Positions 39,197 to 46,338 of a DNA stretch of 64,000 nt are shown one piece after another. The stretch lies in the sequence record PQ287644.1; one strand, written 5' to 3'. The notes beneath the pieces were generated by a model, which saw only the letters and a list, made by a program, of their open reading frames with translations, was not told where the DNA came from and did no database searches. The position numbers were made by a program, and so were the translations under genes. Every line of letters starts with the position of its first letter. The stretch's first letter is position 1.

Positions 39197-40498
39197 TTAT
39201 TTCAATGCCATCTCCAAGTCTAAGAGGTTCGTACGGCTGCCCGCTGTGTGGTGTGCCTTCATGCGCTGCAATAAAAATGCAGTAGGAATCAAGACCACTT
39301 CAGAGCTGAGACGATGCCCTAAAGCCCCTAGACCTTCCCCACAACAGGTCTTACAGTAGTAACCGTCCTTTAGGGTACAGAACTGAGGGACTCTGGCTTG
39401 TACGGGTTTATTAACGTAGCGATCCAGGTTTTCAGCGGTGAGCTGTACCAGGACTTTCCCATCCTGGATCCACGTTCCTACCCAGTATCCTTTATTGGTT
39501 GGGAGGATCGTAACGGTTTCGGTCACCGGGGTACCACAATCCACGATATCCTCGCTAACGGCTGTGCGGCCTATTAGACGCAACGTTTCCTTAACCCTAG
39601 CCCCACCTTCACCGGTGGACATAGAACGGCTGTAAGAGCCCTCTACGGCCGTGTTAATGTAGTCTGCCAAGAAGTTCGGATCCCAACCCTCCGCCAGGGA
39701 GTTAGGGAGCAGTACCCAACCGTCTCCTGAAGCATTGGGTTCAATACCGAAGGAAATGAACATCCGTTTACGCGAGTTGTCAATAAACTTCTTTGCAATA
39801 AAGAACTTACGACTAGGACCAGACATCACGATCTTCATGTCCAGCGCCACACACTGATCAATAATCGAGGTAGCAACAACCGGATCATTGAGTTCGTCTT
39901 TATGCTCTTTAAAGAGACGATCCCTGAGTTTAATGACTTCAGGACTCACCGTTAGGGCATCTACACCACCCGGTTTAATGAAGTGAGACCCTAACCCTTC
40001 CAGGAACTGGCAGTTATGGGAGAACTTCAAACACTGGTCTACACTCGCCTTCCCTTCAGGTACTGTTTCCCCCGGTGGGGGATTATCCACCATGAGAGTA
40101 CTCAAGATCTTCAAGATAACCGGTTTAGTGAACTCCTGGTTAAGGTAGGGTTGGGTCTTCCCGAAGCATTCCCAGAAGAGGATAACGTTGAAGAGTAAGA
40201 GTCCAAAGGTAGTCGTGACCGCTTTACCTTGCAACACGGGATGGAAGTCTCCCGGGAGTTCCAGGATTTCATCCATGTAGAACAGGGGTTCATTCACCTC
40301 CCCATTTACGGTATGGGTAGAACCCTCTACCACGACATTGAACCGATTATCCTCCACAAAGACAGCGTAGGGGTATTTCTTGAACTGTCCAGAGGAATCT
40401 TCGTCTTCAAACTGGATAGTAATAATCGATTGAATAGCCGCCTTTTCGTTATAGGCTCGGTTATTCAGAAAGAGTTTAAGGTAGTCGAGTTTAGTCAT
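39197..40498 (-). CDS. rpoC: Virion RNAP beta' fragment (phiKZ gp80-like)
   Basis: GEGG...L (bridge-helix region), DCGT and PQFC...YYCKTCCG Zn site. Confidence 0.85.
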   Translation of the reverse strand: MTKLDYLKLFLNNRAYNEKAAIQSIITIQFEDEDSSGQFKKYPYAVFVEDNRFNVVVEGSTHTVNGEVNEPLFYMDEILELPGDFHPVLQGKAVTTTFGLLLFNVILFWECFGKTQPYLNQEFTKPVILKILSTLMVDNPPPGETVPEGKASVDQCLKFSHNCQFLEGLGSHFIKPGGVDALTVSPEVIKLRDRLFKEHKDELNDPVVATSIIDQCVALDMKIVMSGPSRKFFIAKKFIDNSRKRMFISFGIEPNASGDGWVLLPNSLAEGWDPNFLADYINTAVEGSYSRSMSTGEGGARVKETLRLIGRTAVSEDIVDCGTPVTETVTILPTNKGYWVGTWIQDGKVLVQLTAENLDRYVNKPVQARVPQFCTLKDGYYCKTCCGEGLGALGHRLSSEVVLIPTAFLLQRMKAHHTAGSRTNLLDLEMALK

Positions 40499-41394
40499 GG
40501 GAGTTCCACTCGCTGAATAAGGTCTTCAATACGGGTCAATGTCAGAGGGTCTTCAATGACCGAATAGAGGTATTGGGTCATCTTATCCTTAAGCCATTCG
40601 TTATTGATTTCAGACACCAGGAAGAACCCAATGACCTCCTTGGCATACTGAAGGGTGCTGTCTTCCGTTTGTTGGGCCAGGAGAACCTCCAGGTTACGGC
40701 TGTAGAAACTCAGGAAACTCTTTACACTCCCTCCCAGTTGTCCGTTCTTCTTAACGTGTTCAAAGGCCAGAGTTCCTTCAATAAGGGTTGCATTCGCCCG
40801 AATACGCTGTTCAATAGGGGTGGGAACGTTCTCAATCTCCTCGGGGTTAAAGAGAGCGTCCTTAATGGCTTTAAGGGTGACTTCTGAAACATCCTCAATA
40901 AAGGTTTCGTACTCTGATAGGTCGAGGTCTTCACCCAGGTAAAGTTGCATCACCAGGAACAGTCGGTTCACAGGGGGGATGTCATACGCCTCCAAGACGT
41001 GTTTAAGACCAATCAGGTCTTCATACTCCTGCAACTCCATAAAGAACGACAACAACCGAGTTAAAGCAGGGAGGTTGTCTTCACCCAGGAAATCGTGATT
41101 GAAAACGAACCCTAGCTGTTCCAGCACATCGATTATATTGGTCGTTAGGATCAAATACACCTGATGCTTCTTAGCTGGGATTTCCAAGGCTTCATTAATC
41201 AACAGATCAGTCAGTTGACTGGGCATCAAGGACTCAGGTTGACTGAGCATAATTAAATTAAACGATTCATCCAATTCTTTAGCCTGATTGGCGGGTATGG
41301 CGTTCCGGAGTTCTGACCAGAGACCCCCTACCAGGGTGTCAGCCAGGTACACGCCCTCTTCCAGGGTAACAGATTCTTCATGCTCAATAATCAT
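40495..41394 (-). CDS. Conserved protein, probably virion-associated
   Basis: Start MIIEHE at 41394 with GAGAG RBS; overlaps the vRNAP gene start by 4 nt. Confidence 0.7.
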   Translation of the reverse strand: MIIEHEESVTLEEGVYLADTLVGGLWSELRNAIPANQAKELDESFNLIMLSQPESLMPSQLTDLLINEALEIPAKKHQVYLILTTNIIDVLEQLGFVFNHDFLGEDNLPALTRLLSFFMELQEYEDLIGLKHVLEAYDIPPVNRLFLVMQLYLGEDLDLSEYETFIEDVSEVTLKAIKDALFNPEEIENVPTPIEQRIRANATLIEGTLAFEHVKKNGQLGGSVKSFLSFYSRNLEVLLAQQTEDSTLQYAKEVIGFFLVSEINNEWLKDKMTQYLYSVIEDPLTLTRIEDLIQRVELP

Positions 41395-41439
41395 TGGGTT
41401 AACTCTCGTAAAGTGCGTTTCCAAAGGGAATCATAGCAT

Positions 41440-42309
41440 ATGTCGACTAAACAGCAACAGCGTCGGGTTAAGAAACTCAATAAGCGCAAGCAAGTGAGTA
41501 AACAAAAACAACGGGCTAAGAACATCCAGGACGCTTACCTCCGACAGGACTTTGGTAAAGGCTACCAGGGGGAGGCCCTGAGTAAAGATGCCTTGTACGA
41601 TAAGGTCAGGGGTGAAAACAAAGCCTTCTCGGTGCGTGACCTTATTAATAACCGTCAACGTCTGGCTGAGCTGGCTGAACAGATGAAGCTGACGGGTGAT
41701 GAGGACATCCCTCAGCTCTTCAGTGGGGAAGAACTCCTCAACGCCATCAATGACATGATTACCGTCACCATTAAGCTCCACAGTGGGGTGATTGTGTACA
41801 ACCGTCTGGCTGAAGAACGCCGCTTCGACATCAGTGAGGACGACCGTACCTTACTGGAGAACTACGAACGCAAAGTGGTGGAGTTTGCGGAAGATGTCTC
41901 AGTCGTTACGACCCTGCATGAAGCGGGTCAACAACCCGAGGACTACTTTGAAGTCGTCCTTAACCTGGCCGATGTCATGGCAGCCCTCAGTGAGGAGTTT
42001 GGGGAACCGGTTCTGGATCTCATTACCCAACAGGGTGATCTGATCGAAGCCTATGCCGTTGAACACAAACCTGAAGGACTGTCTGTCTACGATTACATGT
42101 GTCAACTTCATAGTGAACGTATTACGGTTATCCAACAGTTGTACGGTGAGAGCCGGCTGAATGACGTCTTTAACGAATTGCACACCCTGGAGCAGGAACT
42201 CCCAGATTCCCCTGAAGAGATCCCAGGTGATAACCTCCCCTTCCCTGAGAAGGAAGAGGTTGGCGAATTCATCGCTATTTCCAACGATCCTGTCATTAAC
42301 CCCCAGTAA
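41440..42309 (+). CDS. Hypothetical protein
   Basis: 289 aa with a basic N-terminus and acidic C-terminus. Confidence 0.7.
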   Translation: MSTKQQQRRVKKLNKRKQVSKQKQRAKNIQDAYLRQDFGKGYQGEALSKDALYDKVRGENKAFSVRDLINNRQRLAELAEQMKLTGDEDIPQLFSGEELLNAINDMITVTIKLHSGVIVYNRLAEERRFDISEDDRTLLENYERKVVEFAEDVSVVTTLHEAGQQPEDYFEVVLNLADVMAALSEEFGEPVLDLITQQGDLIEAYAVEHKPEGLSVYDYMCQLHSERITVIQQLYGESRLNDVFNELHTLEQELPDSPEEIPGDNLPFPEKEEVGEFIAISNDPVINPQ

Positions 42310-42321
42310 GGGACTGTTTGT

Positions 42322-44045
42322 ATGTCTGAGAATGTAACCCCGAACGAAAACCCTGAACTGACTCCCCCTTCGGAGTTGAGCAAAGCCGTTGAACAAACGA
42401 TTCCCAAAACGGAGCCTTCCAGCCACTTTGGCTTCATGGATACCCACACGCCTCAGAATACACCCATGAAGGAGGTGGTGGAGCCGCTCAACCCCATTAC
42501 CAAAGAACTGGTTGAAGACGATCGAGCTAGGGGTTCACCAGTATCTTCCTGGGGGTTGGTAAAGAAGAGAATGAGAAAGCGGCTGAACTGATTACCAACT
42601 GGAGTGCGTGGAATACGTTCAAAGAATTGAATAAGGTAGGGGAGGTTTCCCCAACGGTCTTTGCATCGGCTAAGCAAGACTGGGATGCCTTTGTTCAAGA
42701 GAACTACCCGGATGTGAATCCCAGTGAGTTGGAGAAGACCGCTAGTGATCTGTTCAAGTTCATGAACAGTCTTCAGGAGAACCTCCAACTTCGTACCCGC
42801 ATGGTGCGGGAAGAGAATATTACCAACGCCTCGCGTCGGTGTGATAAACTCACCACGACCGATATCGTGGGTAAAACCCCGTCGGTGAATAAGAAAGGGT
42901 TGAGTATTGCAGATCGCATGATTCGCTCGACCATTCGTTCGTCGGGGGGTGTATACCAGTATAACCAACTGCTGCGTAATTCGTTCCTGAGTATTACGTG
43001 GGAACGTCCTCAGAAGCTGGAAGTCGCCGATCTCATCAACAACATTAACCGCCGTATTCGGGGGTATGTACGGCGGGTCGGTGGGAACGCCATGGCGTTG
43101 TCTTACATTGCGGGGTATATTGAGATCTGGGATTGGTTGAAGCCCCGCTTGGTCAGCAGCAGTGTCAAAGGCCTGGCGGATTTCGATGACCTCAGCAAGG
43201 TGATCCGTATTACGGACATGCCGGTGATCTGTGCAGGTCTCTTGGCGTCGATCACGGATGACGGCGTCCAAATGGACCTCCGCTGCATGAACCCCAGCTG
43301 TGACTGGTATCAGTTCGATCTCATTGATCCGACTAAGTTGGTGCAGCGTCGTCCGTCAATTGAAACCGATGAAGAAGCCGCTTTCTTTGGTAATATCTTC
43401 AGTGGGCGTGAACAACATACCGTTGATGAAATCCTCAAGATGATCGAACAGTCCACCTACGGGATGGACAATCGGTACGTGTACAACGAGGATCAATCCA
43501 TTCGTCTGAAAGTAGGACCTCCCAGTCTGTCGGATGCCTTCGCTACCTTCGACTATTTCGTAGGGCGGGTGGATAAGCAGTTGGCGGATATTAACAACAA
43601 GGTCAACACGGAACAAGACCTGGAAGAGCAACGTCTCCTTCTGCTTAACAGCTTGAGTGGGGCGGAGTACATGCACTGGGTGGAAGAGTTCGCCATCATG
43701 CCACCTCCGGGTGAGGACAGTGAACCCCAGATCATTAAGCGGGCCAAGGAAGACCCTAACGAGTTCAATAAAGGTCTTATGGACTCCCTGCTGACCGATG
43801 AGGTGATGAATAAGAACTTGGTGTTGTTCGTCTACAATAAAGCGCCTTATCTGACTCGGACCTTTATTGGTGTCCGTAACTTCGTGTGTCCGAAGTGCGG
43901 TACGGAGTCGGATGCTCACCAAGAGGATCGTAAACTCGGGTATACCCCGATCGATGCCTTTATGAGTTTTTTTATCCATTCCCAGCTGATGTTGATGAAT
44001 CTGGCGATGGAGCGTCAAAAGGTAAACAACGAAGCCCTCTCCTGA
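42322..44045 (+). CDS. Zn-ribbon protein (about 574 aa; possible baseplate hub or tail chaperone), frame broken at 42530-42533
   Basis: The 89-aa and 472-aa ORFs join by a -1 shift at aGGGGt; the downstream frame is open from 42531. CMNPSC and CPKCG motifs. Confidence 0.65.
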
Positions 44046-44515
44046 TTGGCGGTAAAGCGATTCACAATCCGGAGTTCTCGGCGGTTTACTTAAACCTCCA
44101 GAAGCAAGATCTCAGTGGTCTCAAGGAAGAGACTATCCTGTTGAACAACCAAGCGTTGCATGACATCAACATGGGATATGTCTCACCCCGTAATCTCCCC
44201 CCTCACCAATCGATTAAGTTCTTTCCGTCTGAAACCCGGTATTACCACCCCTTCTCGTATGAGAGTATAGGAGAGTATTACGGGACTTTTCGGCTGGATG
44301 AATACCTGCCCTTAAAGGATTACCTGGAATTGCCCGCTAACTGTGCAGACACGTTGGTTAAGGCCGTTCAAAAGGGACGGGAAAAACGGTTGGCAATGGA
44401 GAAAGAACATCTGAAGGAAGAGGAAGAGAAACAGGCGAAGAGTGGGGGTAAACGAACCGCCTCGGACTCGGTTTCTATGGATGCATTACTGGATCAATTG
44501 TCTAAACTTCGTTAA
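44042..44515 (+). CDS. Downstream ORF without a canonical start (CTG start or -1 frameshift extension)
   Basis: Frame open from 43934; no ATG until 44171; T TTT TTT slippery site at 43967-43973; CTGA overlaps the upstream stop. Confidence 0.6.
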   Translation: MIGGKAIHNPEFSAVYLNLQKQDLSGLKEETILLNNQALHDINMGYVSPRNLPPHQSIKFFPSETRYYHPFSYESIGEYYGTFRLDEYLPLKDYLELPANCADTLVKAVQKGREKRLAMEKEHLKEEEEKQAKSGGKRTASDSVSMDALLDQLSKLR

Positions 44516-44524
44516 GAGAATGGG

Positions 44525-44553
44525 TAACCTGGGGGGTCTAAGCCCCCAGGTTA
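44525..44553 (+). terminator. Terminator hairpin
   Basis: taacctggggg-gtctaag-cccccaggtta. Confidence 0.7.
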
Positions 44554-44617
44554 TCTTATGACATACATGGTGACACCTCGTCTCTATACCGCTGTCTAAC
44601 TGAAAAGGGCCCTCCTA

Positions 44618-45226
44618 ATGTCCAACGATTACAAAGCACCTGAGGTTACTGACCTCGGTAAGAAAGAAGAAAGTCCGAAGACCCAACCTACGCCTTCCAC
44701 CCCCAATACGGTGGCTAAGGCTCAGGGTGCTAAATTCGAACCCGTACCTCTCCGTATTGGCATTGGCCAAATGGTCAATGGTAAAGGTAATGCGGTCACA
44801 GATATCATGAAAGAACGGATTGACCGTCACCTGACCTACCTGGCCGGTAAGAAAGGCTTCACCAGTGATACCGAACGGGAGGATGAACAAACCTCCTTTA
44901 TCGAGATCATTGGTTCTACACTGACCCTTCCGTTTCCCCAGTACGTCATCGTTACTGACTACCTGTTGGCGGTTATCCGGGAGAACCGGGAAATCTTTGC
45001 CAACGGTACGGCATTCCGCTTTACCTACAAGCTCCGTAAGGAGTACCCGATAGAGAACGTTAAACTCTATCACACCTACATGACCTTCCTGACGTTCATC
45101 GCGAGTAACTGGGAAGCTCGTCATCGCCTTAACCGCATCATTGATCTGGGAACGGCTATCCGCGATCTTCCTCGTAGGGGCAAAGAGAACGTCACCCAGT
45201 ACTTTAATAAGCTGCAAAACGTTTAA
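44618..45226 (+). CDS. Hypothetical protein, probably virion
   Basis: 202-aa ORF with a Pro/Thr-rich N-terminus. Confidence 0.7.
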   Translation: MSNDYKAPEVTDLGKKEESPKTQPTPSTPNTVAKAQGAKFEPVPLRIGIGQMVNGKGNAVTDIMKERIDRHLTYLAGKKGFTSDTEREDEQTSFIEIIGSTLTLPFPQYVIVTDYLLAVIRENREIFANGTAFRFTYKLRKEYPIENVKLYHTYMTFLTFIASNWEARHRLNRIIDLGTAIRDLPRRGKENVTQYFNKLQNV

Positions 45227-45252
45227 TTTCCCTTAGACTCTTTATCCAAGGA

Positions 45253-46338
45253 ATGCTTCCAATGGACAGTGTTGTACTTACCGAAGAAGACGGTAATGGC
45301 TATGAAATCCCAGATCTCCCTCATATCGGGATTGTGTATGATGCGCTCAACGATACCCTGGATCAAGTGGATCGGGGCGTTGCAGGCACGGAAAGCCTGA
45401 CTGCCTCCCAACAGTACCTGGTGGGTGTACTCAGTGCGAACCGACCTGGTTACTCGGTGACCGGTAACGAAGGCTTTATGGCCAATATCGGTGCAGGTCT
45501 TAAAGCCGCGTATGAGTACGTGGTGAAGATGTTCAAGAGTCTCTGGGACTTCTTCTTCAAGCGGGATGTGTCTCAGAAGACCTCGGATGCTAAGAAGGAG
45601 ATTGATGACCTCCAGACAAAACTGGAGGTGGTTCAGACCGGGGGTAAGACGGAAGCGGAAACCCAGGAAGCCCTGCACTCCATGAAGGCCCAGGTTAAGG
45701 AACAGGCCCAATCTAGCTTTAAGATCGACGGGGTAGACGCAGAAGAATGGGTGGAGAAACAGGCGAAGACTTCTGCTACCCATGAAGAGAAGAAAGCCGC
45801 GGTTAAGACCCTGGCTCGAGAGCTTCCCAAGGTCAACACTCGGGGTAAGAAACGCCTCCAAGGTGTCATTGAGCGGATGATCAAAACCCAGCAATATTTG
45901 GTCAGTGTGATTGATGTCGCTGATAAAGAAGCCCGAGAAACCCTGAATGAAAACCTCATGCGGGTAACGGACTCCATGAAACTCCTCCGCACCAATGTTC
46001 ATCAGTCTACCGAGCAGCTGAGTCGAGTGAAAGACGTTAAAGACCTGACGGCTGTTCACAACGTCATGAACGGTGTTATTAAAGAGATCGATACCTTTAA
46101 GAATGCTGCTCAGGCTGTACAGAGTGTTCGCAGCAAAATGGCTGACATGATTAAGACCGTCGAACAGCAATTGGCTGAGGTGGCTAAAGGTGGAGGTGAT
46201 ACCAAAGCGACTCAAGCAGCGCTGGATGAACTCCGCAAGATCATGAACTTCCTGGTTAAATGCGGTAAATGTATTACTAACATCATTGAAGACAGTGTGA
46301 AGCTCCAGAAAGCCTTTAATGGTGTCTTCGGGCTGTAA
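45253..46338 (+). CDS. Internal head protein paralog
   Basis: G-N-E|G site followed by the amphipathic helix FMANIG...LWDFFF that is shared with downstream head proteins. Confidence 0.7.
   Translation: MLPMDSVVLTEEDGNGYEIPDLPHIGIVYDALNDTLDQVDRGVAGTESLTASQQYLVGVLSANRPGYSVTGNEGFMANIGAGLKAAYEYVVKMFKSLWDFFFKRDVSQKTSDAKKEIDDLQTKLEVVQTGGKTEAETQEALHSMKAQVKEQAQSSFKIDGVDAEEWVEKQAKTSATHEEKKAAVKTLARELPKVNTRGKKRLQGVIERMIKTQQYLVSVIDVADKEARETLNENLMRVTDSMKLLRTNVHQSTEQLSRVKDVKDLTAVHNVMNGVIKEIDTFKNAAQAVQSVRSKMADMIKTVEQQLAEVAKGGGDTKATQAALDELRKIMNFLVKCGKCITNIIEDSVKLQKAFNGVFGL

Follow-up and report, generated by a model that had tools for sequence, protein, structure and literature searches.

The locus and its two reading frames

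Sequence record PQ287644 belongs to Pseudomonas phage HHBS8_1, an EL-like Elvirus and a nucleus-forming jumbo phage of the Chimalliviridae. The stretch of DNA analysed here, which we call the window, is its first 64 kilobases (kb), and our subject is a run of T near the 3' end of one gene, the homolog of EL gp47 and phiKZ gp77, together with the open reading frame (ORF) that continues past this run in the -1 frame. From a comparison of this locus with its relatives we believe, with a probability of roughly 0.8, that the run is a site of programmed -1 ribosomal frameshifting, T_TTT_TTT, by which the gene would yield a short and a long isoform. The elements of the locus that bear on this reading are the following.

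42322..44045, plus strand: frame-0 gene, homolog of EL gp47 / phiKZ gp77 (phrog_4585), assigned by its PHROG match; broken by one frameshift in PQ287644
43967..43973, plus strand: candidate slippery heptamer T_TTT_TTT, the proposed -1 shift site, from sequence, conservation and codon usage
43973..44045, plus strand: putative dual-coding overlap; frame 0 would give the short form's C-terminal helix, frame -1 a Pro-containing linker
43973..44515, plus strand: -1 frame extension of 180 codons and a stop; includes HHBS81_CDS0053 (44171-44515), with the equivalent of EL gp48 beginning at 44141

Positions 43962-43976 read ATG AGT TTT TTT ATC, with the T run at 43967-43973 in the phase T_TTT_TTT, and 23 codons separate the second Phe codon from the frame-0 stop at 44043-44045. 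The -1 frame is open from 43934 to a stop at 44513-44515 and contains no ATG until 44171. A first, sequence-only reading of the window had described both the motif and the ATG-less frame, and both descriptions hold, with the addition of an earlier TTG at 44141 that is preceded by no GTG. Its core proposal, a programmed -1 shift into an ORF that lacks a start, is strongly supported by the comparative evidence from the heptamer, the codon usage and the stop-free -1 frame that is given below.

By megablast the region 42300-44600 matches the HHBS8_1 record at 100% and with unchanged coordinates, and phage EL and seven more full-length EL-like records at 98-100%. The EL annotation divides it into gp47 (574 amino acids, aa) and gp48 (124 aa, from a TTG start). 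In the HHBS8_1 record it appears as three coding sequences (CDS), two of which are the broken upstream gene. Among these near-identical genomes the small downstream gene is not annotated uniformly: EL and GXNNE2 give it a TTG start and 124 aa, HHBS8_1, HHBS47_1 and MIZ-Pa99 an ATG start and 114 aa, and IR-QUMS-PaBa1 leaves it out. We also observed that the record of MIZ-Pa99 (PV472050) is placed in the Straboviridae despite 98.6% identity to EL here, and that the vB_PQ1 record (PQ516283) lists 488 CDS in 184 kb with many split genes, which suggests an assembly of low quality.

The upstream gene is of the expected length in the relatives and not in the window. The sequence-only reading had taken it to be an ORF of about 574 aa, but the PQ287644 copy is one base shorter than in six relatives, and the gene is therefore split into ORFs 42322-42591 and 42627-44045. 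In the sister phage HHBS47_1 the gene is intact, with no substitution relative to the window copy and otherwise identical across 2.2 kb. A recent mutation or a fault of assembly is the probable cause of the break, which is separate from the finding at the proposed shift site. It does lend something to the view that the two-frame arrangement is itself an artefact, either a homopolymer of wrongly determined length or a pseudogene split in two, as the same record carries this other frameshift in the gene and its relatives do not share it. The T run, however, has the same length in all eight EL-like copies that were fetched, the window's record and phage EL among them. This rules out a sequencing error at the run and removes the alternative, raised in the sequence-only reading, of an under-called homopolymer with eight T. 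In addition, every genus examined retains the two-frame arrangement, with both frames apparently under purifying selection. We find an artefact or a decayed gene extremely improbable, and in our assessment the distribution data have already refuted it.

EL gp47 matches the full-length profile of phrog_4585 at E 6e-159, all 50 of the 50 distant members searched match it as well, and tblastn connects the gp47 family with PHIKZ077. In the family alignment, where the mean column identity is 20%, the only invariant columns are four Cys in two pairs, a Phe-Phe, two Gly and one Asp. Pfam gives nothing significant for either the upstream protein or the -1 part, and the PHROG matches of the upstream protein are to families of unknown function only, with none to chaperone families.

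Conservation and selection across relatives

The evidence that carries our reading comes from relatives of the locus, which were gathered from IMG/VR, from annotated phage records and from contigs coding for distant profile matches. Further loci were reached by tblastn walking and include phiKZ (PHIKZ077), an SPN3US-like phage, RSL2, Bacillus phage AgentSmith, Halocynthia phage JM-2012 and FBKp24. Each of the 32 distinct loci that keep the Phe-Phe dipeptide has an in-frame T_TTT_TTT, T_TTT_TTC or T_TTT_TTA, 11-37 codons before the frame-0 stop. In the clade of EL, RisingSun, Miami, pTD1, OBP and Aeromonas phages, the site reads T_TTT_TTY and lies 21-27 codons before the stop in every one of 23 distinct loci, at protein identities of 25-58%. 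T_TTT_TTN is also found in three metagenomic relatives, in phiKZ gp77 and in the SPN3US-like phage, RSL2, AgentSmith, JM-2012 and FBKp24; the set of 32 spans Vibrio and OBP phages too and reaches relatives at about 20% identity. Even at this distance the Phe-Phe dipeptide is invariant in the family alignment.

The -1 frame is conserved along with the site. It opens 12-195 nucleotides (nt) upstream of the heptamer in the 32 loci and continues past it for another 149-191 codons in 31 of them, to the stop of the small annotated gene; the remaining locus (L038) is a short contig that ends after 113 open -1 codons. The sequence-only reading had proposed looking for the T run and an open -1 frame in homologous loci, and both are present in all 32. 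When the -1 frame alone was used as a tblastn query, starting from the second codon past the heptamer, it matched Erwinia phages RisingSun and Joad, Shewanella phage FishSpeaker and the Klebsiella Miami group at about 30% identity. These matches begin at query residue 1, well upstream of the frame-0 stop, and each covers two annotated genes. The RisingSun, FishSpeaker and Miami loci share the motif ATG-NNT-TTT-TTT followed by near-identical bases. In phiKZ (AF399011 complement; locus L039, 2646-3149) the end of PHIKZ077 contains a T_TTT_TTT at which a -1 frame of 165 codons opens. The annotated PHIKZ076.4 (80 aa) is the last third of this frame, and 85 codons that contain no start precede its annotated beginning. 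What the comparison shows is the site itself, the -1 ORF that lacks a start, and the conservation of both within the Chimalliviridae and beyond. Since every relative examined retains this site, the small downstream gene would be the tail end of a longer protein.

The nucleotides of the site are held against the codon preferences of the genes in which they lie. The first Phe codon is always TTT, though these genes use TTT less often than the alternative Phe codon, and in five loci it makes up 0-5% of the other Phe codons. The codon ahead of it is AGT, AAT, GCT or ACT (Ser, Asn, Ala or Thr), which without exception ends in T. Over 12 separate lineages the joint chance of such a site against codon usage is about 1e-15.

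Past the site the -1 frame is free of stops. In the gene bodies stops make up 9.8% of -1 codons, whereas there is none among the 1462 -1 codons that lie between the site and any ATG, GTG or TTG in the 32 loci (log10 P about -69 when the loci are treated as independent). The other alternative frame stays open for just 9-33 codons. We aligned the -1 translations, each read in the -1 frame alone, and found an invariant Pro at positions 2 and 4 past the site and an invariant Leu that closes the overlap. Conservation begins directly past the site, and conserved blocks occur well ahead of any start codon. In the DNA alignment the first base of each invariant CC pair in the two -1 Pro codons is a frame-0 wobble position. 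For the second pair the frame-0 residue can be Thr, Ser, Ile, Arg, His or Ala, so the constraint there comes from the -1 frame. Frame 0 is likewise conserved to its end, which is modelled as a helix (residues 444-471 of the AlphaFold2 model described below). Taken from these alignments, both frames, and with them both products, are indicated to be under purifying selection.

These data bear directly on the possibility that the locus holds two separate genes, the second started independently either by termination-reinitiation at the CTG at 44042 or at the annotated TTG or ATG. Public annotations all call a separate small gene, and in a few relatives a canonical start lies just 3-5 codons past the frame-0 stop (alignment columns 27-28). 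However, the first ATG, GTG or TTG is scattered over columns 27-74, a spread of about 47 columns, and is often the Met of a conserved internal motif, which argues that it is not a conserved start. The -1 conservation with its invariant residues begins instead at the heptamer, 21-27 codons before the frame-0 stop, and two independent genes would leave the retention of the heptamer against codon usage unexplained. The CTG at 44042, which the sequence-only reading had offered as a start coupled through CTGA, is not conserved, as relatives read GGA, GAC or GAG in its place, and we reject it. An independent start for the downstream ORF is in our view very unlikely.

We saw no fused single-ORF relative among 52 homologs (563-615 aa) or among the best 150 of 342 profile matches, and from this absence we argue that both products are needed. 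Forms of 686-693 residues do exist (phrog_8054), with the extra length at the N-terminal and not the C-terminal end.

How the shift may occur

Under the frameshift reading, most ribosomes on a gene of the EL gp47 / phiKZ gp77 family would stop at 44043-44045 and release a short form of about 574 residues. A minority would slip back by one base on 43967-43973, where two Phe transfer RNAs can re-pair, and would read the -1 frame on to 44515. In place of the 23-residue C-terminal helix, the resulting long form would have a Pro-containing linker and about 150 residues that make up a helical domain; this domain is the product that is now annotated as EL gp48, HHBS81_CDS0053 or PHIKZ076.4.

The same protein products could be made by transcriptional slippage, with the phage or host RNA polymerase adding one U on the T run. 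Jumbo phages of this kind use their own unusual RNA polymerases, and a run of 5-8 T is present in every locus, including five that do not have a perfect heptamer. Against this, about half of the lineages have a run of only six T with a C after it, and some have five T. Runs of five or six T are short for efficient polymerase slippage, for which longer runs are usually required. The fixed phase X_XXY_YYZ and the T at the preceding wobble position are required by the ribosomal model only. Ribosomal slippage fits better than polymerase slippage because of this fixed codon phase, the preceding T and the frequent T6-then-C, and we infer that the shift is ribosomal. Slippage by the polymerase appears unlikely.

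Several points nevertheless weigh against a ribosomal frameshift. The support for it is all comparative, and the T run on which it is built would permit polymerase slippage too. We looked for the elements that might stimulate a shift, of which an RNA structure 5-9 nt downstream is common though not obligatory, and did not find them: RNAalifold gives zero pairs for a conserved RNA structure past the heptamer, no downstream stimulator appeared in 14 single-sequence folds (z-scores near 0), the mean z for the 45 nt past the site was +0.27 over 30 loci, and no Shine-Dalgarno-like element was seen upstream of the heptamer. Since neither an RNA structure nor such an element was found, the efficiency of the shift is unpredictable, and the lack of a ribosomal stimulator is also a point in favor of transcriptional slippage. 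Lastly, 10 of 133 long distant representatives do not have Phe-Phe. Five of these were fetched, and they have no perfect heptamer, yet they keep a run of five or six T at the same position. Two of them read G_GTT_TTT, and in the other three only the A-site Phe codon can re-pair. Their -1 frame is open for 164-215 codons, save in one where it is ended by the contig edge. As these relatives keep the T run and the open -1 frame, the arrangement outlives the perfect heptamer.

Weak hairpins were seen around the frame-0 stop in some relatives. A hairpin with this stop in or beside its loop, about 60 nt past the heptamer, is possible in L013, L015, L017, L019, L023, L025 and L028. Over 30 loci the mean z was -0.90 compared to -0.53 for a control region, a weak signal, and none is predicted in the window. 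We considered such a hairpin as a stimulator, and the difference in z is too weak to claim it.

The amount of long form made is probably small. In E. coli the heptamers U_UUU_UUU and U_UUU_UUA are much less shift-prone than A_AAA_AAG (PMC5009743), and given this together with the lack of a stimulator we would expect a frameshift at low level, with the long form as the minor product. Low-level shifting of this sort has a precedent in T7 gene 10A/10B, where a -1 shift occurs with X_XX = G_GU (Condron et al. 1991, cited in PMC5009743). As proposed for the present case, Phe codons near the 3' end of a phage gene lead to a C-terminally extended minor form, and the G_GU type of site is the one seen in two distant relatives of gp47. 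The T7 gene is a structural gene, however, and the protein, the phage group and the role differ; T7 also needs a distant 3' element to which we found nothing comparable. The dnaX gene of E. coli (PMC5009743), which gives tau and gamma, resembles the arrangement proposed for our locus in its -1 shift on a homopolymeric heptamer and in the N-terminal part shared by the two isoforms. The dnaX shift yields the shorter of the two products and has an upstream Shine-Dalgarno-like stimulator and a downstream hairpin, whereas here the shifted product would be longer and no stimulator was detected.

A search of the literature, which did not cover subscription journals, found no published frameshift in baseplate hub genes or in phages that are phiKZ-like, jumbo or of the Chimalliviridae. 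The sequence-only reading had likewise known of no such report for nucleus-forming jumbo phages, and within the same coverage this still stands. The frameshift proposed here would be of a known kind.

Possible function and meaning for the phage family

The best known case of two isoforms made in this way is lambda gpG/gpGT and the frameshift conserved in the tail assembly chaperones of long-tailed phages (Levin 1993; Xu, Hendrix and Duda 2004, summarised in PMC5009743). There, as proposed for our locus, the shift lies close to the gene's 3' end and the downstream ORF has no start of its own. A short major product is accompanied by a minor one that carries a C-terminal extension, and phages of little sequence similarity retain the arrangement. 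Our protein is four times larger (574 residues), has four invariant Cys and no match to a Pfam or PHROG chaperone family, and comes from a nucleus-forming jumbo phage with a contractile tail. Its neighbours are annotated as hypothetical proteins, as a virion or head structural protein (on the opposite strand) and, downstream, as a DNA polymerase or an RNA polymerase subunit. None is labelled as one of the tube and tape-measure genes between which a G/GT pair is expected, in an annotation that is sparse. Thus the suggestion of a G/GT-type chaperone pair in the sequence-only reading is borne out in its expression logic, with a shift at the 3' end, a C-terminal extension and two products that appear to be selected, and is not supported as to family membership. 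The likeness seen in the comparisons is one of expression strategy, and neither its sequence nor its size, nor its gene position as far as annotated, marks the protein as a G/GT member.

Structure prediction points toward another group of assembly proteins. The AlphaFold2 model of the 42627-44042 piece (472 residues) has a predicted local distance difference test score (pLDDT) of 81 and a predicted template modelling score (pTM) of 0.78. Foldseek found no match to this model in the PDB with E < 0.5. Against BFVD, homologs from jumbo phages rank first and are followed by more than 10 T4-type proteins of about 250 residues that are named baseplate hub assembly protein, hub subunit or hub assembly chaperone (E 1e-4 to 1e-2, probability 0.99-1.0, template modelling score on target 0.46-0.57). 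By sequence, PF12322 (T4_baseplate) reached a best E of 0.1 in 3 of 50 family members, which is below threshold, and phrog_150 (baseplate hub) was matched at 2e-4 in one of the 50. In T4, gp26 and gp51 are hub assembly chaperones, and gp51 is absent from the finished particle (PMC3004832). The predicted fold of the window protein is like that of gp26 and gp51 (PF12322; phrog_150), whereas these are proteins of about 250 residues with no reported frameshift, and the sequence match falls below the threshold. A search of PDB sequences gave no chain that matches the gp47 family, for either of its parts, which fits a non-virion role without proving one. The model of the -1 domain is of low confidence (pLDDT 53.5), with about 32 disordered residues followed by helices.

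The resemblance of the predicted fold to T4-type baseplate hub assembly proteins makes a role as an assembly chaperone plausible. By analogy in fold with T4 gp26/gp51 and in expression with lambda G/GT, the two isoforms may act together in the assembly of the baseplate hub or the tail. Two things should lower confidence in this. The hub function would be drawn from Foldseek matches at E 1e-4 to 1e-2 and from a Pfam T4_baseplate match at E 0.1. Further, the Churi homolog of phiKZ gp077 is listed among the early-infection proteins (PMC11849849), which is odd for a late tail-assembly factor. We thus offer the identification of the gp47/gp77-family protein as an assembly factor only tentatively.

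Depositors have given the relatives several names. RisingSun gp53, ZPAH34 gp061 and LAh10 gp004 are labelled "putative ZipA-like cell division protein", a label that no search in this analysis supports, and other depositors name relatives "putative baseplate hub assembly protein" or "baseplate protein".

The surroundings of the gene are also shared across genera (window 40495-46338; syntenic loci L027-L034). The common order is a minus-strand gene resembling virion structural genes, a gene of 230-290 aa, the gp47-family gene with its -1 ORF, a gene of 180-200 aa and a last gene that has 361 aa in the window and at least 118 aa in the other loci, which stop inside it. The two neighbour genes searched gave no PDB sequence match. 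One further element follows the -1 ORF.

44526..44552, plus strand: GC-rich hairpin of ten pairs, 11 nt past the -1 ORF stop; core 44532-44547 from a consensus scan, longer stem read from the sequence

This hairpin may be terminator-like and close the transcription unit, with equally many consensus matches expected by chance.

For the annotation of these phages, a frameshift at the heptamer would mean that a conserved gene pair needs correction in at least 289 public phage records with a family match (69 + 220), among them phiKZ gp77 with PHIKZ076.4 and EL gp47 with gp48. The small downstream genes in these records would have arbitrary starts, with 25-85 conserved residues missing. With Phe-Phe and the T run retained in proteins that are about 20% identical, the site would be among the most deeply conserved frameshift sites known in phages, and the heptamer could serve as a simple sequence marker for the gp47/gp77 gene family.

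For the biology of the family, the finding would add an isoform of about 730 residues to the proteome of an intensely studied group of phages, and it points to a two-isoform assembly factor as the function of a protein of unknown role. A more far-reaching reading, which we consider rather doubtful, is that nucleus-forming jumbo phages and their relatives universally share this shift as a recoding event that has gone unrecognised. The isoforms would then form an assembly machine of fixed ratio for the baseplate hub and tail, the contractile jumbo-phage counterpart of G/GT on a different, much larger and Zn-binding scaffold. If this were true, a chaperone ratio controlled by frameshifting would be a convergent principle of tail assembly.

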